Positions 4,038 through 61,038 of a stretch of DNA of 64,000 bases are shown here, piece by piece. Source of the stretch: Podarcis filfolensis (lineage: Eukaryota); NCBI GenBank assembly GCA_964270895.1, contig OZ185438.1. One strand, written 5' to 3'. The notes under the pieces are model-generated. The model ran no database searches and had not been told where the DNA came from. It saw only the letters and a program-made list of their open reading frames with translations. Both the position numbers and the translations under genes were made by a program. How positions within the stretch are numbered: the stretch's first letter is position 1; every line of letters starts with the position of its first letter.

Positions 4038-4637
4038 TTGTTGTTGTTTAGCCATTTAGTCATGTTGGACTCTTCGTGACCCCATGGACCAGAGCACGCC
4101 AGGCACTCCTGTTTTCCACTGCCTCCCGCAGCTTGGTCAAACGTATGTTCTTAGCTTCGAGAACACTGTCCAACCATCTCGTCCTCTGTCATCCCCTTCT
4201 CCCTGTGCCCTCAATCTTTCCCAACATCAGAGTCTTTTCCAGGGTGTCTTCTCTTCTCATGAGGTGGCCAAAGTATTGGAGCCTCAGCTTCACGATCTGT
4301 CCTTTCAGTGAGCACTCAGGGCTGATTTCCTTCAGAATGGATAGCTTTGATCTTCATGCAGTCCATGGGACTCTCAAGAGTCTCCTCCAGCACCATAATT
4401 CAAAAGCATCAATTCTTTGGCGATCAGCCATCTTTATAGTCCAGCTCTCACTTCCATACATCACTACTGGGAAAACCATAGCTTTATCTATATGGACCTT
4501 GGTCAGCAAGGTGATGTCTCTGCCTTTTAAGATGCTGTCCAGGTTTGTCATTGCTTTTCTCCCAAGGAGCAGGCGTCTTTTAATTTCGTGACTGCTGTCA
4601 CCATCTGCAATGATTAGGGAACCCAAGAAAGTAAAAT
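4038..4637 (-). mobile_element. RTE-BovB LINE, 3' portion (runs into the gap)
   Basis: Minus-strand translation EIKRRLLLGRKAMTNLDSILK...IDAFELWCWRRLLRVPWTA is BovB RT C-terminus; (CAA)n-type tail. Confidence 0.9.
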
Positions 4638-4776
4638 NNNNNNNNNNNNNNNNNNNNNNNNNNNNNNNNNNNNNNNNNNNNNNNNNNNNNNNNNNNNNNN
4701 NNNNNNNNNNNNNNNNNNNNNNNNNNNNNNNNNNNNNNNNNNNNNNNNNNNNNNNNNNNNNNNNNNNNNNNNNNNN
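4638..4776. other. Assembly gap (139 N)
   Basis: Run of N. Confidence 1.
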
Positions 4777-12884: not shown

Positions 12885-14100
12885 CTGTAACTTACAAACT
12901 CTGTCCTCTCTGTGTCTTGATGTAAAAATTGGGGTTTGGCTTTTGCTGCCCAGATCCCCATGGGGCTCTGAGTCTCCGAAGTCCATGATCGGTCAGAGAA
13001 AAAATGTATGGAGACTGGATCCAGTGGAAAGCAAGGCAGATACTCATTTTTCTGTTGCAACAGAGTTCCCTCCCCTCCTTCCAAGGAGGGAGAGACCTTG
13101 AACAAAATAGTGCAGGAACCTTTAAAGACTTTTGACATTTTCCAACCCCCTTAGCCAAAGAACACCCCAAAATCATCATACATCTACAGCAGAAATCCTG
13201 TCTCCCAGGATACCTGATAATGATCACTGATTGCATTACCTGGGCAGCCTGGCTATTCTTTTGTGATGGTTAATACCCCAAGCTGGAATTAAGATTGCCG
13301 GAAGAAATATAAACAACCTCAGATATGCAGATGACACAACCTTGATGGCAGAAAGTGAGGCTCCATGATCACTGCAGATGGTGACAGCAGTCACAAAATT
13401 AAAAGACACCTGCTTCTTGGGAGAAAAGCAATGACAAACCTAGACAGCATCTTAAAAAGCAGAGATATCACCTTGCCAACAAAGGTGATATCTCTTTGCC
13501 GGATAGTTAAAGCTATAGTTTTCCCAGTAGTAATATATGGAAGTGAGAGCTGGACCATAAAGAAGGCTGATCGCCAAAGAATTGATGCTTTTGAATTATG
13601 GTGCTGGAGGAGACTCTTGAGAGTCCCATGGACTGCAAGAAGATCAAACCTCTCCATTCTGAAGGAAATCAGCCCTGAGTGCTCACTGGAAGGACAGATC
13701 GTGAAGCTGAGGCTCCAATACTTTGGCCACCTCATGAGTAGAGAAGACTCCCTGGAAAAGACCCTGATGTTGGGAAAGATGGAGTGCACAAGGAGAAGGG
13801 GACGACAGAGGACGAGATGGTTGGACAGTGTTCTCGAAGCTACCAGCATAAGTTTGACCACTGCGGGAAGCAGTGGAAGATAGGAGTGCCTGGTGTGCTC
13901 TGATCCATGGGGTCATGAAGAGTCAGACAGGATTAAAGGACTAAACAACAGTACTTTAGTTCCTGAATGCAGGTCACAGGCTCACCCTATTCATACACAA
14001 ATGTGGCCTTAAGATGGGATTTGTAAGTGAAAAGACAATGAGAAGGCTTTCCCTTACTGCAGGGGAATATTGTGGGCCATTTGCCTGCAATTTCCCTAAC
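12885..14100 (-). mobile_element. LTR related to 9661-10326, interrupted by BovB; ends approximate
   Basis: Shares blocks with the first LTR (TTGCAACAG, CATCATACAT, GATTG.ATTACCTGGGCA.CCTGGC, TTCCTGAAT.CAGGTCACAGG) on both sides of the BovB insert. Confidence 0.55.
13278..13950 (+). mobile_element. RTE-BovB LINE, 5'-truncated with an internal deletion
   Basis: LRYADDTTLMAE RT motif at ~13318; ORF 13365-13883 is BovB RT C-terminus. Confidence 0.92.
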
Positions 14101-19392: not shown

Positions 19393-19750
19393 AATGAATG
19401 AATGAATGAATGAATGTTCAGTGGCACCTTAGAGACCAACTAAGTTTGTTCTGGATATAAGCTTTCGTGTGCATGCACACTTCTTCAGAACCTTAAGGGT
19501 CTGGGGACTTCTGTTTCAGTGTATTTGTAGAAGTGGGCATGCACACGAAAGCTTATACCCAGAACAAACTGCACACTTCTACAGATACACTGAAACAGAA
19601 GTCACCAGACCCTTTAAGCTTTCGTGTGCATGCACATGAAAGCTTATACCCAGAACAAATTTGGTTGGTCTCTAAGGTGCTACTGGACAATTTTTTAATT
19701 TTTATTTATTTATTTCGACTGCGTCAGACCAACACGGCTACCTACCTGAA
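19393..19750. mobile_element. Penelope-like element with inverted termini
   Basis: GCACCTTAGAGACCAAC...AAGCTTTCGTGTGCATGCACAC occurs in both orientations; TTTAATTCTAAC is duplicated on both flanks. Confidence 0.75.
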
Positions 19751-31079: not shown

Positions 31080-45041
<13,962 letters not shown>

Positions 45042-46420
45042 TGATATTCAGCCATACCCCCCTGCCCTCCATGAAATGAACGGTGCCCCTGATGTATCTG
45101 ATTGCTCCCAATGGCTTTCTTGGTCTTCATCATTCCTGTACTAAGCGACTCTTAGGACCTAAACACTTGATAATTCTGAATGCTTGCAAAGTATTTGGGG
45201 CCATTTGCACTGTGAATGTCTTAATATCAAGCGGTGTAGGTTGAACAAGATTCTCTTTCCTTCAGTGTAGGTGCCCCTGGTCACTATCACTCCCTTATCA
45301 AGTTGCTAAACTTTTCTTCGTTTTGGAGGATTCCCAGCCAGTTGTTTTTTTTTTTAGTTTCATTATAAATCATATTTATAAATTGCTGTTACTGCTGTCT
45401 TTGGAATAGCACAGCATCTTGTTTATTTTCTTGGTTTTATTTTAACTTTTAATATATTATTATCTGTGAATATCTGGGCTGCTGGCTAGCCCAGTTTTTC
45501 AAGATTGAGGGTAAATGTCTTACTGTAACATATGAAGAGACCTTCTCCAATACTCCAGTACTACTGAGAGATGAATAATACTTTTCCATTATCTCCTGGT
45601 CAGGTACCTTTACTTCCTTTGTCTAGGTATTATACTGATTCTGAAATCAGGTCTTTGTTCAGGTTTATACTGAATTCCTCCCCTCCTTCAGATATCAAAA
45701 TTAGAGTTTGGTTCAGAAAATGGGAAAACCTTGAATTTTATTTTGTTAGAATATTCCCAGGTCGTATCTGATGCAGAAAAGATAAAACTACTACTGAGCC
45801 TAAGTAAACAACCAACTGGATATGTTGTTTACTTATGTGCTTACTCATGTTTAGAGCCTGCAGACAGTAGCTAGGGAACAATTCAACAGTTTTTCCCAAT
45901 CTCTTTCCTGAGAAAGCCTAAATACGCTCTCGTGAATATTTATTACATGCGGTTTGCTGCTGTTAACCCACATGCTAATGGAAAAGTAACCACTTAATCT
46001 TACAGCTACCTCATTTTGTAAGAGAGCAGCAACATTTATCTATTAAGCAGGGATTTTTTTACAATTAAGATTTACAATTTTAATAATGAATTCAGAAATA
46101 AACTTAAATATGGAATGTGTAACAGCAATAAAATCTGGCAAACTGGGGATTTCTTCTGATTCTCATGGACTGAAATTACTAAACGGCTGCTATTGAATTG
46201 CACTTTTTTTTTTTAAAAAAAGTGCCTGTTACCACAGCAACTTTCATTTCAGGGTTTGCCGATAAAGTTGGGTAGTAATGAGCCACTCAAATCATTATTT
46301 AAAGGAGACATACTGATAATACTATGAATATAAATCTTGCTGAATCGTTAAATAGTTGTGCCACTATTTTAAGTAGCAAATATTTCTTTACTTCAAAATT
46401 GAAATACAACATGTATCTTA

Positions 46421-46450
46421 TGTACAAATAAATAATTTTTTTACTCTCTT
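46421..46450 (+). terminator. TMPRSS2: Probable TMPRSS2 poly(A) site
   Basis: TGTA (46421), AATAAA (46427-46432), U-rich downstream; implies a 3' UTR of ~1.4 kb. Other AATAAA near 46096 and 46127 are alternatives. Confidence 0.55.
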
Positions 46451-46718
46451 AACCTTTTGGCTAATTAATATTTCTTGTGTTTCTTGTGATAGTAGGAGCA
46501 TTAGCAAAAATGGGCACCTACAACTGGAGAATATTTGGGCTTCAAACATCCTTTTCACACTGTCCTTGCTGGATGAAGCTGATGGGAATGAGACAGCATT
46601 TCTATGGCCACTTTCCCTGAAAATGTAAATTAAGGAAGATTAACTGCAGAACAGACTTTCCCCCACAACAGTAACAATGTTTTCCATTACTCAAAAATGT
46701 TGTCTATTGAAGATACTA

Positions 46719-46918
46719 CAGTCGTACCTTGGAAGTCGAATGGAATCCGTTCTGGAGCTCCATTTGACTTCGAAAACATTTGGAAACCAAAGCACGGCTT
46801 CAGATTGGCTGCAGGAGCTTCCCAGCAGCCAATCGGAAGCCCCATTGAATGTTCGGCTTTCGAAAACTGAAACACTCACTTTTGGGAACCGATTTGTTTG
46901 GGATCCAAGGTATGACTG
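46719..46918. mobile_element. TcMar-Tigger-type MITE
   Basis: CAGTCGTACCTTGG ... CCAAGGTATGACTG. Confidence 0.8.
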
Positions 46919-47379
46919 ACTATATTCATACTTGAAATCTTGTTTTGGATCTTTAGCATGACATGAATTAGGATGGTACATTCTGGCCAAGCAATCTGTG
47001 ACCCCCTCACATATTTCCCATCAGCCACAGAGCATGGCTAATGGTGATTATAGGAGTGGTAGTCGTAAACATCTGGAGGGGCAGAGGCTGCCTAACAGGG
47101 TAGAATGGTAAAAACCTTTCCTGCATCATTGTTTTTAAAACACAAGCTTCAAACAGGAACCTCCAGCATCAGCGCAAGCTCGGTGGAAATACAGCAGAAG
47201 ATGCCTTAGGAGATTGAACAGCGACCACCACTATAAAGGAGCCTGTAGCGGAAGGAAAGATTAAAATGCTTTTTTAAAAAAGCATCTTAAACATGGCACT
47301 TATTTTGAAGCCTGTGGGAAAAAATTGAAGAGTTCCTGACGGTGGTGCTTGAGAATTATGACAGAACCAGACAAGACGC

Positions 47380-47418
47380 ATAAAATGAAGTTTCTCCCCC
47401 TTTTATTGTACAATAAAA
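47380..47418 (-). terminator. Poly(A) site of the truncated Mx paralogue
   Basis: Minus strand reads TGTAC-AATAAA (47407-47402), then GU/U-rich TGCGTCTTGTCTGGTTCTGTC; ~70 nt after the stop codon. Confidence 0.7.
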
Positions 47419-47475
47419 AAATACAACAGAGCCAACTGGAGACACTACTGCCCTACACATGAACACCAAATTCCG

Positions 47476-47574
47476 CTACCATTTAAGAAGCACTGGTAAA
47501 ATAAAAGTGTGTGCCTGCTGCCAGAAAGTTTGGAGTTGAAATCTTATTTGCTGTTCTAAAGTGGGCAAAGATTT
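47476..47574 (-). CDS. MX1: Truncated Mx terminal exon
   Basis: Acceptor CTTTTTTCCTTTTAG|; [16 protein letters not shown] (Mx-like) then [16 protein letters not shown]-stop (non-Mx). Confidence 0.85.
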   Translation of the reverse strand, partial: KSLPTLEQQIRFQLQTFWQQAHTFILPVLLKW

Positions 47575-50500
47575 CTAAAAGGAAAAAAGAAAGAAAGAAA
47601 AGATGTATATGGTGCTGGGGGAAAAAACTTGTAATGAGTAAAGAAACAAACTTTGGGGTTGATGTTTCATTGTTGCTGTTTTTAAAGTGTCATTTTGCTA
47701 ACTTACGGAAATGTGTTCCACAAGCTCGCTTGTCAGTTTCTCGGCTAGTAAGGGGACTGTGGCTTTTTTTTCCTGTAGAAGGATACTGTATGGGAACAAA
47801 GAAAATGTTTACTAGAAAATCTGATGCTAACAATTGCAGTTAAACTCACTGATGTTTTTAGTGTTGCATTACGTTTTACACAATATTACTTTGCTTCCTG
47901 TGAAAAGTGTGGTTTATAAATATTTAATAATAATAACAATAATAATAACAATAATAATAATTTATACCCTGCTCATCCGGCTTAGTTTCTCCAGCCACTC
48001 TGGGTGGCTCCCAATCGAGTATTAAAAACAATACAGCATTAAATATTAAAAGCTTCCCTAAACAGGGCTGCCTTCAGATGTCTTTTAAAAATAGGATAGT
48101 TGCTTATTTCCTTGACATCTGATGGGAGGGCATTCCACAGAGCAGTCGCCACTACTGAGATGGCCCTTTGTCTGGTTCCCTGTAACCTCACTTCTCGCAA
48201 TAAGGGAACCGCCAGAAGGCCCTCAGCGCTGGACCTCAGTGTCCAGGCTGAACGATGGAGGTGGAGATGCTCCTTCAGGTACATAGGACCGAGGCCGTTT
48301 AAGTAACTGTAATTATACTATTATCTTAAAAATCACTCTCTAGTCTATGAGTACCTAAAGCATTTATGTTTCTCGAAAAATGCTCTCTCTTCCTTGAGTG
48401 CAGAGGCCAAGGTCATGTTGGACTGGATATCTTGCTGCCCACGACATTTCACAATCATATATCCCTTTTTCAAGGGAATGACTTGGTTTCTCACTATGTT
48501 CACAACTGTCCCCTCAGTTCCTCTGTCCATCAGGTCAGGCTTTGTCACGATCCCTTGGGATGAAATATGGAAAGACATTAGGAAAAAACCCAACATAATA
48601 CAAAATGGCAAAGGTGACGCACAATTGAAGGACTGTTCACACTTGTATAGAAATCATCTTGTCTGCATTGGCAAAATCAAGGGCTCAAAAACCATCATGC
48701 AGGCCAAAGAGTTCTACTTTCTTGCAGTGGAATTAAGCAAAATATTATGTCTTTGAACCAGGGCCAACTGAAACATTATGGAGAAACCACCACTTCCCCT
48801 GAATTCCCTAAGCTAACTTTCAGGTACGATGAAGTATGTTGTCGCATTGCCAGTGCTGAATAAAGTCCAGCTGCCACTCAAGCAAAACTCCCTATATAGA
48901 ACTGGGGACCTTTGGCTTGTCTTCATGATGAGGAAAAAAGGAAACACATGTTTTCATGTGGGTTAGTGAGATAAATAAAGAATACTTAAGGAACTAAACA
49001 AATAGTGACCATGAACCATTTAAAGCAACAACAACCTACAAATACCGACATTCCGGGATCTGAAAAGCACGTTCTCATTTCAACAGTGCAAGATTATCAA
49101 AGTTAAGGAGAATTATTTTGCCTCCTTACCAAGCGTTCTCTCTCCATTTGGATCCACCTCCTGGGCCATTTTCAGTGCCTCTGTTGTGGCAATATCAACA
49201 TTACTTGGAACCACCACTAAATTTATTGTCTCTTGTTTATCAATAAATGTTTTAATCAGCTTTTTGATCTGCAATGAAGGCAAACAGAACTGCTGTTAGA
49301 GCTACTGTATAGTTATTTCACTGTTTGATAGAAAGTTGCCTAGGCCAAGTTGAAGCTAGTACAGGAATCAAGGCAGGATAATATACTGGGCAAGCTGCAA
49401 GGCTGAAAGAGGACTGGGGTTGCCAGTTTAGGGGGTAGGCAGAAAGCACCAGGACTGGGAGCTTGCAAGAAGCAGCAGGAAAGGAGCAGAAACCTAGTAA
49501 GGAATGCAGTACACTTATCTTGGGCAAGATATTTAGTGTTTTACCTGATCTCCAATATTTACTGGCTGATTACCCACAGCCACTCTTGCAATCCCTGGCA
49601 GATCAATCAGAGTCAAGTCTGGAACTTCAGGAGATCTAATTTCAAGGGTAATTAGTTTATCACTAATGGCCACTCCATCACCAGCTATTATGTTCTGAGC
49701 TGGAATGAAGAAACAAGAAAAAGTTTAACATCAACATTTCAGAATATCATGTCACAGGACTGGCAGCCTCTTCTGGCTACCATTTGTTATACAACACAGG
49801 TGCTAAACTTGGAAGGAAGAAAAACTCTTTAGAAAATCAGTACAGTGATATCTCAGGATGTGAACGGGATCCGTTCCGGAGCCCCGTTCACATCCTGAAG
49901 CAAATGCAACCCGTGACTGCGCATGCCACGATTCGCCGCTTCCGCGCATCCGTGTGACGTCATTTTGACTGCGCATGCGCGAGCGGCGAAACCCAGAAGT
50001 AGCGCATTACGTTACTTCTGGGTCGCCGCGGAGCACAACCCAAAAGCACTCAACCTGAGGCAACTTCAACCCGAGGTATGACTGTATCTTCTTATAATTA
50101 ATGAAGTTCTGAGACTGGAAAGGTTAATATGGCTATGTTTATCAAACAGTGTTAACGGAACGGTTATAAATTTTCTTGTAAAAGTTAATTCTGGTTTCCA
50201 ATGGTGCAGTTTTATTTTCAAGGGCTGTTGGTTTTTTGCATACAGAAGGTCCCATGGTTCAATCTCTGAACCATCTCCAGGGAGACAAGAGCTGGGGGAA
50301 ACATCTCTGCCTGAATCTTCTAAATAGCAGCTGCCAATCATTGCAGACCTGGGACCCCTTCATGGGGCATCTGTGACACCACAATGCCCACAAGACTCTC
50401 CCCCCCAACCTAAAAAAAACCCAACCTGCTGGAGGACAGCAATTGGGAAAGCTGGGAAAGGTTAGAAGAATACTATAGAAGCCACGTAAGAGCCATCATT

Positions 50501-53500
50501 TGATTTCAGCAATGCATTTGCCTCCACATCTTCCAAACTTTAGCCATTGAAGATATTTGGCCAGCAATGTGGAATGGAAAAAAATCCAGTGTGCTTTCGA
50601 TGAGTTCATAAGTTCATTTGTGACAATCAATGTCAAATACAACGTGAGAGAAGCTTCATTGTTATCAAGTGTTAAGCTTTGTTTGCTAAATAAAAGTAAA
50701 ATAAATACACTAAATTGGATAAGATTTTATAAGAAACCTTATTTTAATTAAAAAAAAATCCAGTGCAAAATTACCCTAAATTTTCTGGTAAACCTCATCA
50801 CTGGTTTTGGGACTATATATAGAATTTGGTTGAAGAAGTATTCTCATTTATAATAGAAGGAAATTAAGAAAGAAAATAATGATCTGTTATTGACTACAAT
50901 GGAAACCACAACACTCACCTTTTCTTATTTCTATTTCTACCATTGAAGGATTTGCAAGTTCCATATATTTTCCCAGGTAGCTGATTTTCCCATTCCATTT
51001 TTCACCAGGCTGCAGCTTTTTTAGCCTGAGTTCTAAGGGACATCTGGTGACAATGCCTGTTCATGAAGAGAATCCAATTCATTAAAAGTATAGGTTATTC
51101 AGATTCACAGAAACTTCCTAAAGATTGCTAAAAACAGGCAGAATCCCACCGATTATGATGAAACAACACCTAGTTCTAGGGCAAAATCAGCTCCTAAAAT
51201 GGACCTCCATAAATAATCTGAGCAATACTGCAGATGTAGGCAGCTATCTTAAAATCTTTGCACTTAACCTTATAGGTGAACAGTGCCATCCCCGCCCCGC
51301 TGATAATATTACACCAAGCTTTTTAAAAATCAATTTAGTTTCTCAGAAATGAGAGACTTCTAACTGGTAACATTGCTTTCTTTGAAGTGTATCCAACCCT
51401 CCGAGATGTTAAAATAATGCAGGCAGACACCAAAGAGAAGGTAACTTTAGAAAATAAAGATGCCTTTTATAAAGTAGGAACACTGAAGTTAAAAAATCTC
51501 TGAACTTGCACATCCTCAAAGCTTCCCAGAAGGAAAAGCCGGCGGGAATTCTCACCACTGCCCCGTGGAAGAGCGACTCCAGAAAGAGCTTCCAGAACTG
51601 AGCTTTTCCCTGAGCTCTGATCGCCAATCACTGCAATTGCTGGCAATGCCAAGTCCTTCTCCACTCCGAGGGCTCTCAGAGTATCAATAAGGTCAATACA
51701 TGGACGGATCTTCTCTTCGTATTGGTTGAATAAGGTGTTTTCTGGTTTCTGGTTAAAAACACACACATACACAGTTCACTTCCATTTTAGTATGTGGCTC
51801 TATTCATACATCATCTGAGCTGTGGTTAATGGTTTGCTTTGAATAGGGAGAAAACTCCTGCTTTGCGCAAATGGGACCACAAAACACAATCTCTGAAGTT
51901 ATGTCTAAAGTGGGGGCTTGTTTCATTCGAACAAATTACGATGAAGAAACAAAAGAACCGCCCTTGGGTCAGATGTAAAGCTAAGCCAGAATTGTATTTC
52001 AAACACTGAGTGACACTCATAGGAGCAGCTTGGATCAAAAAGATCACTGAACACCCACAAAAAGTAGCATTGGTTCTAGACCAGGCTAGGCACTTCTTTT
52101 TGGTGTGTGAGCATCTTACTCTTGGGTTTTCATTTCTTTCTGCAGAAGAGTTCCTTTTTACAGAAAGGCTTTTCTGCATCTTTTACTTCTTTATAGCATC
52201 AGCAGCATTCCAGCTATCTCTTAGTGAAATTCCCATTACAGGAATAAACATAATCTGGTCCTGTTTCTCAGAGTATATGTTATTTACAAAACTTTACACT
52301 GGTCATTAATGAACAAAGCAAATAAAGCAACATAATCTTTTTCTCTTTTTAGCCATCTGGCCAGATACCTAATGCTGACTCATTCACATACAATTGCACA
52401 TTGGTTTTTGAACAGCTTAGTTCTCGGATGTTTTTGCTCCCGAACGCCACAAACTTGGAAGTGAGTGTTCCGGTTTGCAAACTATTTTTGGAAGCTGAAC
52501 GTCCGACAGGGTTTCTGCAGCTTCTAATTGGCTGCACGAGCTTCCTGCAGCCAATTAGAAGCCACACTTTGGTTTCAGAACATTTTGGAAGTCAAACAGA
52601 CTTCCAGAACGGATTCCTTTCGACTTATGAGGTGTGACTGTAGTCATTTACACTGACCCAGACTTCCTTGATCACATGCCCTGATAAGGACACCTGTTGC
52701 TGGAGAAATTTTCCATTGCCTAGCAACTAGAATATTCCAACAGGACCATGAGCAGAATTTGTGTTCCTTATCATTCTCAAACATCACTAACGTAGTTGAT
52801 TCATAACCAGTCTCCTTCCAGAAAGAGACAACACACCAGGCAGGTTAGTTCCCATGAGAAAGATTCCCTCTCACTCAAGACAACTGGCTGTCTAGAGAGG
52901 AAGACAGTGGCCTCCCTTGTGGTTTCCCCTCTCCATCCATCCTTCCTTCCCCTACTAGTCTTGTAATGGGTCCTGTTCCAACATCTGCTCCTGAACCCTC
53001 ACACAGGCTCTTACAGCTAGGAGCCTATACTCTTGAGAGTGTGTGGGCAACACCTGTTAAACTCTCCAAAGCCAGAGGGGTGGCTGAGTAAGATATCCAG
53101 TACAGTCATACCTTGAAAGTCGAACAGAATCCGTTCTGGAAGTCCATTAGACTTCCAAAACATTCGGAAACCAAGGGAGCTCCTGCAGCTAATCGGAGGC
53201 CGCACAGGATGATTGGGTTCCAAAGAACATTCGCAAACCAGAACACTCACCGGGTTTGCAGCGTTCGGGAGCCAAAACGCTCGACTTGCAAGGCATTCTG
53301 CTTCCAAGGTATCACTTCAGTTACAAGCAGGGCTCAAGGGAGAAGCAGCAGGATAAATTTCAGAAAATAAGAGTAATTATGCAGACCCACTTAATTTCAG
53401 CTTTTCTTGGCCAGTAATCTGGATTTCTGAGGCATACAATCCTAGATTTGTTTAGTGTCAAGAATGCACAACCTTGAGTAAAAGGTTGGCTCTAAATTGC

Positions 53501-53740
53501 AGGATTTCAGTGCTAACAAGGCGCATATTAACTCAAAAGACTTACTTTATTAGGTTGGTTTTGTTTTCCCAGTTGATCCACATCCTCGTGTTTTATGGGA
53601 CTGAACACAAAGCCTTCCATTTTTGATGGAGCAAATACATTTGGTGTAGCAAAATATTGTATAGATTTAGCTTCTTCTGGCAACAGTGATGGGATGGTGC
53701 CTATAGTCCCATTTTGTTGTGGATTCCATGGGTTATTCAT
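47476..53740 (-). CDS. MX1: Mx-family GTPase paralogue, C-terminally truncated (8 coding exons, 1197 nt, 398 aa; 426 aa from ATG 53824)
   Basis: Exons 53546-53740, 51556-51748, 50919-51056, 49545-49699, 49130-49268, 48355-48553, 47707-47785 and 47476-47574 join in frame with GT-AG sites; G1-G4 motifs intact. MX1 versus MX2 orthology cannot be resolved here. Confidence 0.9.
47707..47785 (-). CDS. MX1: Mx exon, G domain end to BSE helix 2
   Basis: [27 protein letters not shown]; 79 nt; donor GTAAGT. Confidence 0.93.
47926..48301 (-). mobile_element. L2-clade LINE 3' end inside an Mx intron
   Basis: Minus ORF ...[42 protein letters not shown]; (ATT)n tail. Confidence 0.85.
48355..48553 (-). 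CDS. MX1: Mx exon with G4 motif
   Basis: [14 protein letters not shown]...[17 protein letters not shown]...FFEKHKCF; 199 nt. Confidence 0.95.
49130..49268 (-). CDS. MX1: Mx GTPase exon
   Basis: [46 protein letters not shown]; 139 nt. Confidence 0.95.
49545..49699 (-). CDS. MX1: Mx exon with G3 motif
   Basis: [52 protein letters not shown]; 155 nt. Confidence 0.95.
49843..50084. mobile_element. TcMar-Tigger-type MITE
   Basis: TA-CAGTGATATCTCAGG ... CCGAGGTATGACTG-TA. Confidence 0.75.
50919..51056 (-). CDS. MX1: Mx exon with G2 Thr
   Basis: [46 protein letters not shown]; 138 nt. Confidence 0.95.
51556..51748 (-). CDS. MX1: Mx exon with BSE helix 1 and P-loop
   Basis: [64 protein letters not shown]; 193 nt. 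Confidence 0.96.
52391..52640. mobile_element. TcMar-Tigger-type MITE
   Basis: Same GATTGGCTGCAG...AGCCAAT hairpin core and TA-flanked ends as the other copies. Confidence 0.75.
53103..53317. mobile_element. TcMar-Tigger-type MITE
   Basis: TA-CAGTCATACCTTG ... CCAAGGTATCAC. Confidence 0.75.
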
Positions 53741-53824
53741 CTCCTCATCTGAAGAGCACCTGTTCTTAATTTTCCGAGCGCGCCGGTCAGATGGAGAATC
53801 ACGCCAGGAAGAGGACTTCAACAT
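53546..53824 (-). CDS. MX1: Mx first coding exon (acceptor at 53855; ATGs at 53824 and 53740)
   Basis: MNNPW start resembles the avian Mx N-terminus as I recall it; donor AAA|GTAAGT is phase 0, matching the next exon. Confidence 0.8.
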
Positions 53825-54889
53825 TTAGTTATCTGGGACTTTCCTTTATTGATTCCTGAAATGATATTACACATTTTGTCAAGAATAAGAAAAGCTCAAA
53901 GCAGTGATGGGGGCTGGATTGGAACTGTGGATGTGGGTGGGTGAAAATGGGGCATGCACATATTTATGGAGATCTGGAAGCAGGAGATACACTAGAATGT
54001 TTGTCTCCACTATTCTCAACTTAACTATTTAAATAAGCAGAAGGAAAGGATAACATCTGCACAGCATTTTACATTCCATCTTAATGCAAATAGCTGTCAA
54101 TCTGCACAATATCTTTATCCAACAATGGTTCAATATTTAATACACTTCCAGTGCAATCCTATGTGGTTTACTTGGAAGCAAGTCCCACTTTATACCATAG
54201 GGTTTACTTTCAGGTAAGGTCAGAATGCTATACAAGCTGAATTAAAAAACTCTAGCTCTCTCAGATCCAAACAAAGGGGAAAGTTCAAAAGGAAGAGTCC
54301 TGTGCAAACAAGTTCTGCTTTTGCAAGCTTGCATATCCATATCCTTTCATTTAAATAAATTGGATTTTTTAAAAAAATGTCACCGTGTGTATTTTTTTCC
54401 CTCACCATGTGCCTGTCTGCAATAATGTATTTTCCCTTTTCTTGAGGGCTAGGCATGTTAAGTCTTTTGCAGCAAAAACAAGAGTTCCTGTTGCACCATA
54501 AATACAAATAAATAAGTGTATTATGGCATAAGCTTCACAGACTGCAGTCAACAGCAGGTGCGTGAAGTGCTATCCGTCCTCCTAGTCAAGACAGCACTTT
54601 GTGTATCTGATACAGAGGACTGCAGTCCTTGAAAGCTTATGCCACAATAAATGTATTAAGTCTTTAAGGCATCAGAAGAAGAAGAAAGGAGTAGAGATGC
54701 AAATGAAGGATTTCCAGGTTTCGGCTCTTAACCCATAAGCATAAAGTATAAATACAAACGGAAATTCAAAGCCAGCTGTGTTCACTACCACCACTACCAC
54801 TATTCTGAAGTAGCAGAAGATAGCAAAGAACTCCTGTCTTCACTCACTGCTACTCTTGTCAGCTGGCCAGCGCCCACAGGATTTCAGAT

Positions 54890-55380
54890 TGTGACGAAGC
54901 ACCTGCTCCAAGGCTGAGGGTATCAACCAGGTGGTCACTGTCGCATTAGCACCGGAGGAAAAAACTTAAACACGTACAGCAGAGTTTCCAAAAAAACAGA
55001 CCAGGGGCAATTGTACTTCATCCAGCAGAGCTTTACTGGTACTGAAGGCAAATGAGCATAAATGGTCACAAATCCAAAACAATTGGGATTGACACAGTCC
55101 ATAAAAATCCAGTTGCAGCACTTACAATAAAACTTACAAACTTAGTAAGACTAAACTTTAACACTACAGCATAAAGAAACAGAACACTAGAACAAAGACA
55201 GAAGTGAAAGTGAGTGAGACCCAGGCTCTTCCTGGCCTTACTATATTAGTCAGCATGACCTTGACAGAATGAACAACAAAACCTGTTGAAACCAGCTGTA
55301 CTCAGCTTCCCAGAGAAATAACCCAAACATCCAAAACTTTCTTCCTGTTTCTTTCACATGGAAATAAACCTTCGATCACA
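54890..55380 (-). mobile_element. Probable solo LTR in Mx intron 1
   Basis: TGTGACG...CGATCACA ends, minus-strand TATA-like motif (~55245) and AGTAAA (~55035); no clean TSD found. Confidence 0.4.
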
Positions 55381-55578
55381 ACAAGAAGAAACCTTCTAGA
55401 ACCCTCTTTGTACAAACCACACACATTGTGTGCCCTGCAGAAAAGGCAAGGAACCCACTTGTGTATAGAGCTCCTGGTATTTGAAAAAACAAAAGTAAAC
55501 ATACTTTTAAGAAAAAGAAAAAAAATCCTAAATCCACTTTAGGGGAATATCCAATACCTGGTAGGCTTAGTAAAGGTA

Positions 55579-55818
55579 CGGTGGTACCATGGTTCTCGAA
55601 TTCAATCCATTTTGGAAGTCCGCTCAACTTGCAAAGTGTTCGAAAACCAAGACACAGCTTCTGATTGGCTGATTGGCCCAAGAAACAATGCCGACAGCCA
55701 AAACAGATGTTCGGCTTCCAAAAAACATTCGCAAACTGGAACACTTACTTCCAGGTTTGCGGCGTTCGGGAGCCGATTTGTTCGCCCACTATGCCATTCG
55801 AGAACCAAGGTACCACAG
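55579..55818. mobile_element. TcMar-Tigger-type MITE
   Basis: TA-CGGTGGTACCATGG ... CCAAGGTACCACAG-TA. Confidence 0.8.
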
Positions 55819-56129
55819 TATTGTCCTACTGTAGATTTTGTGTACGCTTTTAAAGGCAATGTCAATAATTCAGTCTTTGTCCACTAGGTGGCAGGTTCCT
55901 AACTTCTTCCCTGTTGTCGTTCCTCAATACATCATTTTCACTCTGTTTCCTAGCCAGTTTTCTCAAGAATTTGCTCAGTGCTAAGTGATGATGTTCTCCC
56001 ACACTTTAAAAAAATGTTAACGAAATCAATGAGGCCTAGACTTCTAGATAATTGACAGCTGACTGTGTGTGAAACAAAGGACGGAAGTGTTTGATTCATA
56101 TTCTGCTCTAACCACAAAAACAGAATTTT

Positions 56130-56645
56130 TTTTCCCCCCTTCCAGTAGCACCTTAAAGACCAACTAAGTTAGTTCTTGGTATGAGCTTTCGTGTGCATGC
56201 ACACTTCTTCAGATACACTGAAACAGAAGTTGCCAGATCATTCTATATAGTGAGAAGGTGGGGAGGGGTATTACTCAGAAGGGTGGTGGGAATGGGTGGT
56301 TGGCAGATAGCTGAGATGAGCCTGTTGACGGCTCTTAACGACTGCAATAGGTCTTACAGGAAAAAGCAAGGGGTGAGAAGGTGAAAAATGGCTTTGTCAT
56401 GTATAATGAGATAAGAATCCAATGTCTTTGTTCAGACCAGGTCTCTCCATGGTTTTAAGTTTGGTAATGAGTTGCAATTCAGCAATGATCTGGCAACTTC
56501 TGTTTCAGTGTATCTGAAGAAGTGTGCATGCACACGAAAGCTCATACCAAGAACTAACTTAGTTGGTCTTTAAGGTTCTACTGGAAGGAAAAAAATTTTT
56601 TTTTTTTGTTTTGACTATGGCAGACCAACACGGCTACCTACCTGT
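56130..56645 (-). mobile_element. Penelope-like element, 3' ORF remnant with inverted terminal repeat
   Basis: Terminal repeat like 19393-19750 in both orientations; minus strand encodes IAELQLITKLKTMERPGLNKDIGFLSHYT, typical of the Penelope C-terminus. Confidence 0.8.
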
Positions 56646-57639
56646 CACAAGAACAGAGTTGTGCAAAAATGCTCTAATATGTGTAATGGCAGACTTCCAT
56701 GTAATGCAAAGAAAGCTGCTAGACAAGCTGATATTTAAAAGGCAACCCTATTTTAGTAACTTGCCAAAATCCTCTTCCAACTTTTGTCATTTTCCAGTGT
56801 GTTTGAGGAATAAACTCCTGCACCTGGGTTTTTTTTGTCAGCTACTGTATAAATATTTTGCACTTTGTATCATGTTCATAATGTCTCTGACACAAAGGTG
56901 CAAGCTGACTCTCCTGACATACGTATCAGGAAAATAAAAGATGTCCTGGCATGTGTTTCAAATGGTCTGATTTCTGCAACATTTAATTCAAAGTTGAAAA
57001 ACAAAACAAAAACACAGCATGATTATCCATAACACATATGACGTAACTGTAGTAACATAAGATAAGCAGCTGAACCTTTCTCCAATTTTACATACACGGC
57101 TGCTGTCTGCCCTACAGGGGTAAACATGGCAACTTTGCTGGAGGGGGGATTTTAACTGAGAGAACTGTGGGAAAGTATATCTTACCCCCTTTGCAAAGCT
57201 GCAGTTTTTAATCTGATTGTTTTCATTACAGCAGCTGATGGGGCAAACAAACATGGGAGGTCCTGATTGCAAATCTCCTGCTTTATATTTAGTTTGTGGT
57301 CCTATACACAACTATGAGCACGATTGCTCAGATTATTACTTTCTCTTAAAACATGGTTAGAGAACCTTTAAAAGCCTGGAGGCCACCTGAAAGTGAACCC
57401 CCCTGAGATCTTTTGATGAAGGGTGGCATATAATAGAAATGTTAAGAATAACAACAGCAGGAATGATAATAATAATAATATATTCTGGAGCGTTCACCCA
57501 CACCTGACACTTCCATCCTCAGCTCTTCCCCACACCAAGGGGGCATCAAGCTCTGCATCTGCCTGGAACAGGAACTTTTCAGCGCGGCTCCAAACAAGAA
57601 CCAGCCAACGCCCAAAACTACAAGTAGCGTTCATATCAG

Positions 57640-58800
57640 GTGACAAAAGGGCTTCAGCGCTATTCGCGTCTGCCACAAGGGGCGCCATCAGTCTTCCCTC
57701 AGAAAACACCGCCTCTCTGAACCGGACAGCCTGACTAGCCCGGAGCGGAGCATCACTTCTGGGCTGGTGCTACAGGACCGTGAAAGAACGACAACCCGAC
57801 CGCGTCCCTCAGGCTGTTCTGTGGAGCTTCGCGTGCCTGCCTGAGGGAACTGAGCCCCCTTCCCTGGCGTAGCCAAGGGGGCAGTTCCCCCCATCAATAA
57901 AAAGCAAGACGAATCTGAGGGTCTGCGCCCCCTAACCAAAATCCCACGCCCCCTTTATTAATCCCAACTTCACTTCGCCGAGAGTGACCCTCCCACCCCC
58001 GTATCCAAATGGACTTCGGGCGGGACGCTTCCCACCTGCTGCGTCCTGGGGCGCGAAGGCAGAGCGCAATGGGGCCAATCAACGCCGCCCTTCCTCCCCA
58101 AGCCAGGGGCCCGAGAACATGGCGCCTCCCTCCCTCCCTCCCGCCCCATGAAGCCTTTATTCGCCCCATTAAATGGAAAGGCTGAAGCGCCTCCAAGGAC
58201 CGAGCGAGACCTTTCGGCTCTTCCAGGAGGGAAGGCGGAGCCGCAACCAGCGTCGCTCGCCCTCTTGCGGCCTAAAATGAAATCTCTCCTGGAAGGTTGT
58301 TTGCCTATCACTCGGTTAACAGCAAGGCGTCGAAAGGGTCGAGGGGAAACGTCACCTTTACGGAGCGGAGATCTTGGGTGGCGATCTGTCCCGCTGCCGG
58401 ATCTCTGGCTGTTGCGTCCACCGAAGCGACTCCGAGCCAGTCTCCTCTGGATCTCCGGGCCGGCAATTTAGCACCATCCCTCGCCCCGCCTCTTCCCCGG
58501 GACAAAATCTGGGGAAATGAAACTTAAAAGTAAAACCTGGGCAGAAAGGAAAGCGGGAAGGGGCGGGGAGCGGAGAGGATGGTGCCCGGCGTAGCAACTA
58601 AGTTCCCTGGATCGCCAGCGGGGAGAGCGCAGCTGTGGTCGGATCCTGCTGGCGAGCTTCCCAGAAGGCACCTTGGGGCCGGATGCCGGACGAAGCGGGC
58701 CTTACGCCTGATCCCTGCATCTTTACCTTCTTATCCCCCCCCCGCCTTCTTTGTAGGTTTGGGGTGCAGGAAAGCTGGCCCCGCCCAACGTAAGTGCAGT
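57640..58800 (-). promoter_or_regulatory. CpG island, promoter and non-coding exon 1 of the truncated Mx
   Basis: High CpG density, GC box near 58483, candidate donor AAG|GTGACG at 58356. Confidence 0.7.
58513..58524 (-). promoter_or_regulatory. ISRE (interferon-stimulated response element)
   Basis: Minus strand AGTTTCATTTCC fits the AGTTTCNTTTCY Mx-type ISRE; further GAAA half-sites at 58527-58553. Confidence 0.8.
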
Positions 58801-60123: not shown

Positions 60124-61038
60124 GCTGGTTTTTGACTTAGCCAGAGACAAGCTCAGAAAACAGGTAGCAAGTAGCCTGTGCTGGTTCAGTTGAGAGATGA
60201 AAACTCAGTACAAAACTAAGTTGTATAATAGCTTAATTAGAACCAGCTAATAAATTCTCTGGGGAACTCCATAGCTCCAAACCAATCACTGATTGGTTTT
60301 GCAGGAGAGTAAATAGAGACAGCTGTGGGCTATGTATTTAGAACTAGCCAATCTAGCAACAAACCAATGAATAAGATTTCATGTTCTTCAGAACTCTTCT
60401 AGTGCAATGTCTATGCCAGGGGTCAGCAAACGTTTTCAGGAGGGGGCTGGTCCACTGTCCCTCAGACCTTGGGGGCCGGACCCACCATCTGCCAAAAGCA
60501 CCCCCTCTCCCAAAAGGAGCCCCCCCCCCGCCAGTCACACCACAGCCACTGATACCATGTTTTCTGCAGTGGTAATGTCCTGCTGGTTTTTGACTTAGCC
60601 AGAGACAAGCTCGGAAAACAGGTAGCAAGTAGCCTGTGCTGGTTCAGTTGAGAGATGAAAACTCAGTACAAAACTAAGTTGTATAATAGCTTAATTAGAA
60701 CCAGCTAATAAATTCTCTGGGGAACTCCATAGCTCCAAACCAATCACTGATTGGTTTTGCAGGAGAGTAAATAGAGACAGCTGTGGGCTATGTATTTAGA
60801 ACTAGCCAATCTAGCAACAAACCAATGAATAAGATTTCATGTTCTTCAGAACTCTTCTAGTGCAATGTCTATGCCAGGGGTCAGCAAACGTTTTCAGGAG
60901 GGGGCTGGTCCACTGTCCCTCAGACCTTGGGGGCCGGACCCACCATCTGCCAAAAGCACCCCCTCTCCCAAAAGGAGCCCCCCCCCGCCAGTCACACCAC
61001 AGCCACTGATACCATGTTTTCTGCGGTGGTAATGTCCT
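60124..61038. repeat. Tandem duplication, unit ~458 bp (60124-60581 and 60582-61038)
   Basis: The two copies differ by two A/G substitutions and one C-run length, as far as I can see by eye. Confidence 0.9.

Follow-up and report, generated by a model that had tools for sequence, protein, structure and literature searches.

Beside TMPRSS2 in a 64-kb stretch of Podarcis DNA (hereafter the window) lies an Mx gene that looks intact but ends early, and it raises the question of whether an interferon-induced Mx protein can persist as little more than its G domain, or whether we are looking at the remains of an ordinary gene. A first-pass annotation of the window leaned towards the former: after a duplication, the TMPRSS2-proximal copy was thought to have become a distinct G-domain-only paralogue, with a very recent pseudogene as the main alternative. 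The evidence described below favours that alternative. The TMPRSS2-proximal Mx gene is probably a recent loss-of-function deletion allele, that is a nascent unitary pseudogene, traceable to a single deletion of 7 kb specific to the lineage or individual that the window represents.

Structure of the TMPRSS2-proximal Mx gene

The gene lies on the minus strand, where its eight coding exons (53824-47476), all with GT-AG boundaries, splice into a single open frame of 426 codons plus stop (Table 1). The first-pass description of canonically spliced exons free of frameshifts and premature stops is therefore correct, as is its listing of intact G1 to G4 motifs. A dynamin-type G domain is recognisable in the window itself, since Pfam Dynamin_N matches a window exon directly, and positions 1-167 of the 168 in this model correspond to orthologue residues 131-306. 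Coding exon 1 shares 97.8% amino-acid identity with residues 1-93 of the P. raffonei protein (P0406), while coding exon 6 returned 913 Mx-type matches from a representative library.

Homology to Mx, which had been placed as ending near 47528, stops exactly at 47529|47528 within coding exon 8, an exon whose normal length was given as 123 nt and has precisely that length in P. raffonei (L002:16245-16367). What follows was reported as 16 new residues and a stop; the TAG stands, but the count is 17, the T that spans the junction having earlier been taken as homologous. This 17-residue tail is hydrophobic. The 32-residue product of exon 8 found no match among solved structures.

A GED-containing Mx gene adjoins the truncated one, as first noted, and accounts for the single GED exon of the window (Table 1). 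The remainder of this upstream paralogue lies outside the window; in P. raffonei the protein has 651 aa. On the other side, the TMPRSS2-like gene is convergent to Mx, its CDS ending at 45041 and its 3'UTR heading toward Mx, and the TMPRSS2-like gene called in the orthologous loci carries SRCR_2 and Trypsin domains. The spacing of ~1 kb between Mx and TMPRSS2 rests on a putative TMPRSS2 poly(A) site near 46430.

Table 1. Features of the Mx-TMPRSS2 region, in window coordinates.
Feature	Position	Strand	Remarks
TMPRSS2-like gene, 3' part	33859-45041	+	LDLa exon, trypsin exons, large exon ending 43274
TMPRSS2-like terminal coding piece	45030-45041	+	12 nt
Palindromic TTTATTGTACAATAAA	47402-47417	both	AATAAA on either strand; conserved in P. 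raffonei, P. muralis, L. agilis
New C-terminal tail	47528-47476	-	17 non-Mx residues, junction-spanning T included; TAG at 47478-47476
Deletion junction	47529/47528		Blunt; without microhomology, filler bases, repeats or Ns
Coding exon 8 as now read	47574-47476	-	46 nt of former exon (47574-47529) plus new tail
Coding exon 7	47785-47707	-	Second BSE helix begins
Coding exon 6	48553-48355	-	TKPD (G4) and end of G domain; Pfam Dynamin_M positions 2-51
Coding exon 5	49268-49130	-	G-domain core; 100% identity to Podarcis orthologues
Coding exon 4	49699-49545	-	DLPG (G3)
Coding exon 3	51056-50919	-	VTRCP (G2, switch I)
Coding exon 2	51748-51556	-	First BSE helix and P-loop GDQSSGKS (G1); Pfam Dynamin_N match begins here
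Coding exon 1	53824-53546	-	ATG plus 93 codons, fast-evolving N-terminal region; GT donor
Presumed non-coding first exon of Mx	about 58490-58360	-	3' of ISRE-like element
ISRE-like element AAGTTTCATTTCC	58525-58513	-	Promoter motif; second, weaker half-site adjoins
Last coding exon of upstream full-length Mx paralogue	63785-63555	-	GED end and stop; Pfam GED E 6e-17

Orthologues of the truncated gene are full length

In five other lacertids the same gene is full length, at 708-710 aa and with both Dynamin_M and GED: P. raffonei (XP_053242747), P. muralis (XP_028583072), P. lilfordi (CAI5772530), Lacerta agilis (P0335) and Zootoca vivipara (XP_034971708). These orthologues share the locus and the exon structure of the window gene but run 301 residues further, through the stalk, loop L4 and GED, where the window gene does not. 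The order Mx-Mx-TMPRSS2 is common to L. agilis, P. raffonei and P. muralis, and the window, with its Mx locus beside TMPRSS2, is colinear with all three of these loci, which we aligned using the newer P. muralis assembly. Identity to P. raffonei is 98.3% across the locus, and 405 of the 409 kept residues are identical. Relative to intact orthologues at the same position, then, the window gene has lost essential coding sequence.

The first-pass annotation had suggested looking for the same breakpoint in other lacertids, and with all five orthologues full length the truncation is shared by none of them. Because every orthologue examined is full length, the truncated architecture is not conserved, and the proposal of a distinct G-domain-only paralogue arising after duplication is not supported. 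A truncated Podarcis Mx (191-607 aa, or at least 390 aa) was absent from the best 120 matches listed for each protein search, and a literature search returned no paper linking Podarcis and Mx. Judged from these sequences, the window gene is no established G-domain-only paralogue, and the loss appears specific to the lineage or the individual represented by the window.

A single blunt deletion accounts for the truncation

Alignment with the three lacertid loci reveals perfect colinearity apart from a single blunt deletion of 6,975 bp (in P. raffonei coordinates). Lost with it are 77 of the 123 nt of exon 8, every exon that codes for the stalk or GED, and the stop codon together with 1.1 kb beyond it; in orthologue numbering, residues 410-710 are gone. 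The two adjacent bases at the junction map far apart in each comparison locus: 47529 aligns to L002:16290, L003:16191 and L001:15957, and 47528 to L002:23266, L003:23080 and L001:26696. The new tail, its stop and the AATAAA beyond are former downstream DNA and are conserved, the tail lying 1.1 kb past the orthologue stop and being found downstream of the Mx gene in 3 of 3 comparison loci. As conserved single-copy downstream DNA, the tail is neither the 3'UTR of the neighbouring gene nor a transposon, two origins that we considered and rejected; blastn of 46300-47620 against the window recovered only SINE-like repeats, at 46717-46841.

The missing exons have not been moved elsewhere in the window. 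A tblastn search of the 64 kb with five full-length Mx proteins (from turtle, tuatara, mammal and lacertid sources) found no stalk or GED exon other than the last exon of the upstream Mx gene, in keeping with the earlier claim that too little room remains downstream for the missing exons, and blastn of the deleted P. raffonei interval against the window returned dispersed repeats only. Both searches reject displacement of the exons downstream or onto the opposite strand.

It is conceivable, though in our judgement unlikely, that the animal or its species has an intact gene and that the 7-kb segment was dropped during assembly or lies on the other haplotype, which would include a heterozygous deletion picked by the primary assembly. 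The intact orthologue in 5 of 5 other lacertid genomes examined and the almost unchanged state of the kept part are both in line with such an artefact. However, the junction contains no Ns or gap, the sole N run in the window (4638-4776) being far off, and the flanks are colinear with P. raffonei and 98% identical to it on either side. Both breakpoints also fall in unique, non-repetitive and mutually dissimilar sequence, so that repeat collapse is not expected, and other small lineage-specific structural differences in the window resemble ordinary real variants. When the 1-kb flanks of the two breakpoints were compared, they had nothing in common beyond chance 9-18-mers; with dissimilar flanks and unique breakpoints, repeat-mediated deletion and assembly collapse were rejected. 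The deletion could nevertheless be heterozygous, rare or an assembly error.

Regulatory signals and substitutions on the window's branch

The ISRE reported at the Mx promoter was located as the ISRE-like motif AAGTTTCATTTCC, which is conserved in the three other lacertid loci. About 300 bp around it are near-identical in P. raffonei and P. muralis, and in L. agilis the element is conserved and duplicated. At the other end of the gene, where a poly(A) site had been placed ~70 nt past the stop, a predicted minus-strand AATAAA signal (47407-47402) lies 68 nt beyond the new stop, with U-rich sequence upstream and GU-rich sequence downstream. In the orthologues this AATAAA is conserved DNA 1.2 kb beyond the stop codon; a proximal ATTAAA, 167-172 nt after the stop, is conserved as well as the distal signal, and conservation along the interval from stop to AATAAA is flat at ~88%. 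On this pattern the distal AATAAA could have served the gene all along as a distal poly(A) signal, or it could be intergenic sequence that the deletion moved within reach. The first-pass statement that the gene lost its 3' half yet kept promoter, frame and terminator holds for the loss, the promoter, the frame and a usable poly(A) signal, the terminator being either native or newly acquired.

The branch leading to the window carries 2 changes in 1,228 coding nt, versus 32 in 4,918 intron sites; 8 coding changes would be expected at the intron rate (Poisson P=0.014). One of the two is synonymous, and the other, E402Q, located in the retained 46 nt of exon 8, is the only non-synonymous change. 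A search of the Mx remnant for stops or frameshifts found none, and there is no sign of relaxed constraint. Two changes where about eight were expected indicate either that the deletion is young or that the remnant is still constrained. The low count fits a gene that was constrained for most of the branch, and a remnant so free of lesions leaves two readings, a very young lesion or retained function.

What the truncated product keeps and lacks

Positions 2-91 of the 287 in Dynamin_M are kept, and 93-286 fall in the deleted part, so the gene as it stands has no complete stalk (middle domain) with loop L4, exons matching which are absent elsewhere in the window. The GED (orthologue residues 621-707) is deleted entirely. 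The last kept residue aligns with Q351 of human MxA, within the second BSE helix, leaving a product without the third BSE helix and without the last ~10 residues of the second.

Known dominant or moderating Mx forms act by stalk-mediated co-assembly. Engineered stalkless MxA or GTPase-BSE constructs (PDB 4P4S, 4P4T, 4P4U) consist of the G domain and BSE helices, and their chains match the region retained here. In these constructs the C-terminal third BSE helix is fused back on, making the bundle complete; the lizard product differs from them in lacking that third helix, in its shortened second helix and in its hydrophobic tail. The BSE is a three-helix bundle formed from dispersed regions of the sequence, and self-assembly proceeds via the stalk (PMC5458555).

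A maintained G-domain-only protein would be a very different outcome: it would be interferon-inducible and would either tune its full-length neighbour, for instance by way of transient G-G dimerisation, or divert viral antagonists or capsids as a decoy. We consider this very unlikely. In its favour, the promoter, ATG, splice sites, G1-G4 and frame are all intact, a canonical AATAAA follows the stop of the terminal exon, and the branch has gathered fewer coding changes than the intron rate would give, although a young deletion explains the low substitution count equally well. One MX2 study (PMC7391006) reportedly describes binding of a viral capsid by the MX2 G domain alone and moderation of restriction by a natural MX2 isoform. 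Against this, all orthologues examined have the full-length architecture, the deletion is blunt and accidental-looking with a tail drawn from non-coding DNA, and the BSE is incomplete. Moreover, the co-assembly through which known dominant or moderating forms reportedly work (PMC4702540) is impossible here. For the regulator, decoy or dominant-negative role raised in the first-pass annotation we found nothing in favour, and the product also lacks parts of the three-helix BSE bundle (PMC5458555). That the allele has reached fixation or a high frequency in this Podarcis species and makes a stable interferon-induced G-domain protein, tuning or antagonising its neighbour or soaking up a viral antagonist, we regard as a long shot; if true, nature would have produced a stalkless Mx, seen here at its origin.

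A probable recent loss-of-function allele

In the reading we prefer, a young loss-of-function allele, the Mx-Mx-TMPRSS2 locus conserved among lacertids has suffered a recent non-homologous deletion of ~7.0 kb in a Podarcis genome that stands near P. raffonei. The deletion begins 46 nt into coding exon 8 and takes out the remainder of the second BSE helix together with hinge 1, the entire stalk including L4, the GED, the third BSE helix, the stop and 1.1 kb more. The shortened exon now abuts conserved DNA, from which come 17 codons, a stop and a strong AATAAA. Transcription of the allele from its ISRE promoter probably continues and, with the stop in the last exon, nonsense-mediated decay probably spares the mRNA. 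The encoded product would have 426 aa, made up of the N-terminus, the G domain and an incomplete BSE. Lacking the stalk it should not assemble, lacking L4 it should not recognise viral targets and, with less than two of the three BSE helices left, it is most likely unstable, to judge from the structures of relatives, and without antiviral activity. Only the upstream paralogue would then supply Mx function. The intact frame and promoter, strong poly(A) signal and few substitutions would be equally expected of a still-useful G-domain protein.

Comparison with known Mx inactivations

A precedent for this reading is the Mx1 deletion allele of inbred mouse strains, reportedly described by Staeheli et al. 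in 1988. It resembles the lizard gene in its large intragenic deletion, in the promoter and G domain that remain and in its short out-of-context tail. The mouse allele has a frameshift after internal exon loss, whereas the lizard deletion passes through the stop codon into downstream DNA. Although non-functional, the mouse allele is fully interferon-inducible (PMC3880568). Its predicted product (mCG4781, P0159) has 423 aa, near the 426 of the lizard, but keeps ~60 more residues, into the first stalk helix, while the lizard product stops earlier.

Mx loss is also known from toothed whales; there, as in sheep MX2 and probably in the lizard, a lineage or population has lost the use of one Mx gene but retains a paralogue. 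The sheep and whale cases are point nonsense mutations or old pseudogenes with multiple lesions, whereas the lizard case is a single clean structural deletion with a pristine remainder. The premature stop in sheep MX2 is a natural Mx loss-of-function variant (PMC12893586).

An intact-looking truncated gene can thus be a one-step deletion of a normal orthologue, and a new gene class is not required. If the deletion is real, a wild lizard would offer a natural knock-out or hypomorph for one of its two Mx genes, and a reptile would join mice, sheep and toothed whales among known Mx inactivations. With the breakpoint known to the base, a simple PCR across the junction suffices to type the allele. 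Such typing would allow the dispensability of an Mx paralogue to be tested, and would show whether small island or endemic populations of Podarcis segregate for Mx loss.

The truncated Mx gene and its neighbours

The TMPRSS2-proximal Mx gene comprises eight coding exons on the minus strand (53824 to 47476), with an AG acceptor and a GT donor at all internal exon boundaries and a frame of 426 uninterrupted codons followed by TAG. The exons after the first carry the four GTP-binding motifs, including TKPD. Pfam searches run directly on the window exons matched Dynamin_N and the beginning of Dynamin_M, and a 65-residue exon matched 913 Mx-type proteins in a representative library. The promoter block around the ISRE-like element is near-identical in three other lacertids. 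A weaker half-site upstream reads TTTTAC in the window and Lacerta agilis and TTTCAC in Podarcis raffonei and Podarcis muralis, and the ISRE block is duplicated in L. agilis (28-nt insertion; about 4280-4330 of that locus). The first-pass annotation had thus described the sequence correctly with respect to exons, frame, motifs, ISRE-like element, flanking Mx exon and TMPRSS2-like gene.

In the TMPRSS2-like gene, the large last protease exon is not terminal, but is joined by splicing (ATGCAG/GT) to a 12-nt coding piece (ANR, then stop) that lies 1.75 kb further downstream, in agreement with the P. raffonei gene call; because of the position of this piece, the 3'UTR points towards the Mx gene. 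The window's sole N run adjoins a repeat also found at 13359-13950 and in L. agilis Mx introns.

Features of the Mx locus in the window, with corresponding positions in L. agilis (L001), P. raffonei (L002) and P. muralis (L003)
Feature	Position	Strand	Remarks
Coding exon 1	53824-53546	minus	begins ATG; codes for 93-residue N-terminal region
ISRE-like AAGTTTCATTTCC	58525-58513		~4.7 kb upstream of ATG; in promoter block
Weaker ISRE half-site	58533-58539
Last exon of second (upstream) Mx gene	63785-63555		clear GED match, Pfam E 6e-17
TMPRSS2-like protease gene	coding sequence ends 45041	plus	downstream of truncated Mx
Its large last protease exon	43257-43274 (3' end of the exon)
Its terminal coding piece	45030-45041
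Stretch within its last intron	43380-44167
Palindrome TTTATTGTACAATAAA	47402-47417		contains AATAAA (47407-47402)
Jump, near side	47529		L002:16290; L003:16191; L001:15957
Jump, far side	47528		L002:23266; L003:23080; L001:26696
Missing: final 77 nt of 123-nt exon 8			exon at L002:16245-16367
Missing: every coding exon downstream of exon 8
Missing: stop codon	L002:22161-22163
Missing: 1,103 bp past stop codon
Tandem duplication	60124-61038		458 bp
MITE-like element	56107-56614		~520 bp
N run	4638-4776

Lacertid orthologues are intact

The library search yielded Sphenodon and turtle proteins, through which lacertid Mx proteins were reached. The orthologues of Zootoca, Lacerta and P. muralis (708-710 aa) match the eight exons near-perfectly and run 301 residues further, a stretch that is absent from the window; the P. 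muralis cluster also includes 710-aa proteins of P. raffonei and P. lilfordi. The closest orthologue is that of P. raffonei, with 2 differences in 93 fast-evolving N-terminal residues. The P. lilfordi protein differs from exon 1 at 16/93 residues, so the window and that gene copy do not correspond.

All three genomic loci compared (L. agilis, P. raffonei and P. muralis) contain an Mx gene of about 640-650 aa, another of 709-710 aa and a convergent TMPRSS2-like gene, which makes the pairing of two Mx genes an old arrangement common to these lizards. Apart from one jump, at which 6,975 bp are missing relative to P. raffonei, the window is colinear with all three; it is 98.3% identical to the P. 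raffonei locus and about 95% identical to that of P. muralis. The first-pass annotation had proposed looking for the same breakpoint in other lacertids; it is not shared by the lacertids compared, all five orthologues examined being full length.

The junction is blunt, with zero shared bases, filler or N, and the 1-kb flanks of the two breakpoints are not repeats and have no similarity to each other. A simple non-homologous deletion leaves a junction of this kind; a repeat collapsed during assembly would not. An assembly or haplotype artefact is unlikely, and the blunt junction in unique sequence argues against it. The sequence beyond the junction, which provides 17 new residues and a stop, is found with hardly any change at the equivalent position of each comparison locus; the tail is therefore former non-coding DNA, accidentally read.

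The AATAAA beyond the new stop lies within a 16-nt perfect palindrome, providing a poly(A) signal on both strands, and is U-rich upstream and GU-rich downstream on the Mx strand. The palindrome is kept from Lacerta to Podarcis (L. agilis, P. raffonei, P. muralis) and, lying between convergent genes, may serve both of them as a bidirectional poly(A) signal or terminator. In intact orthologues AATAAA sits 1.2-1.55 kb past the stop codon and a weaker-looking ATTAAA 167-172 nt past it; with the orthologue gene ranges covering coding sequence only, either may be the signal used by the intact gene. The earlier proposal that the truncated copy kept its terminator stands insofar as a good signal follows 68 nt after the new stop; that this signal is the native one may or may not hold.

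The predicted product lacks the assembly region

Residues 1-409 of the P. raffonei orthologue contain Dynamin_N and Dynamin_M positions 2-91, while residues 410-710 contain Dynamin_M positions 93-286 and the GED. In alignments to solved human MxA chains, the last retained residue corresponds to Q351, which lies in the bundle signalling element (BSE), within its second helix, ahead of hinge 1 and the stalk. Since the BSE is built of three helices from dispersed sequence parts (PMC5458555), the predicted product would keep the N-terminal region and G domain together with one BSE helix and the greater part of a second; the third BSE helix would be absent, as would the stalk with loop L4. Mx self-assembly is stalk-mediated (PMC5458555).

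Age of the lesion

With P. muralis as outgroup, the window's branch shows 2 substitutions in 1,228 retained coding nucleotides, one synonymous and the other E402Q, five codons ahead of the junction codon, and 32 in 4,918 aligned intron sites. At the intron rate, 8 coding changes are expected (Poisson P=0.014; Fisher P=0.049); the P. raffonei branch, where the gene is intact, has 5. The remnant shows no decay, being free of stops and frameshifts. These counts fit either a deletion late on a branch whose whole length is just about 0.65%, or continuing constraint on the remnant; the events are too few to separate the two, and the absence of stops and frameshifts is not strong evidence for function.

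Several other changes were observed in the window. The tandem duplication between the two Mx genes (2.0 copies, 99% identical) is lineage-specific, because it is single-copy in all three comparison loci. A MITE-like insertion, bounded by 136-bp terminal inverted repeats that are 92% identical, interrupts the intron separating coding exon 1 from the presumed 5'UTR exon; none of the three comparison loci contains it, and a related sequence is present at 19419-19748. Within the last intron of the TMPRSS2-like gene, a stretch of about 790 bp corresponds to about 200 bp in P. raffonei, and the extra about 590 bp are probably another lineage-specific insertion.

A likely loss-of-function allele

These observations make a young loss-of-function deletion allele the likely reading, because the orthologues are all intact, the lesion arose by accident in a single step, and the product has a broken BSE and lacks everything known to be necessary for Mx assembly and target recognition. 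The earlier suggestion of a regulator, decoy or dominant negative is very unlikely, its sole positive support being the intactness of the remnant, against which stands the absence of conservation of the truncated form.

We found no paper linking Podarcis with Mx in the literature searched, and this deletion event appears to be unreported; Mx genes truncated by deletion within a single lineage are already well known as a kind of event. The closest precedent for the loss-of-function allele is Mx1 of inbred mice, whose predicted product (mCG4781, P0159; 423 aa) likewise has a short foreign tail, although it ends about 60 residues further along than the lizard product. The mouse allele is described as a truncated form that has lost its function but can still be fully induced by interferon (PMC3880568). 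By analogy, interferon probably still induces transcription of the lizard allele. Nonsense-mediated decay would not be expected to act on its mRNA, because the stop sits in the terminal exon.
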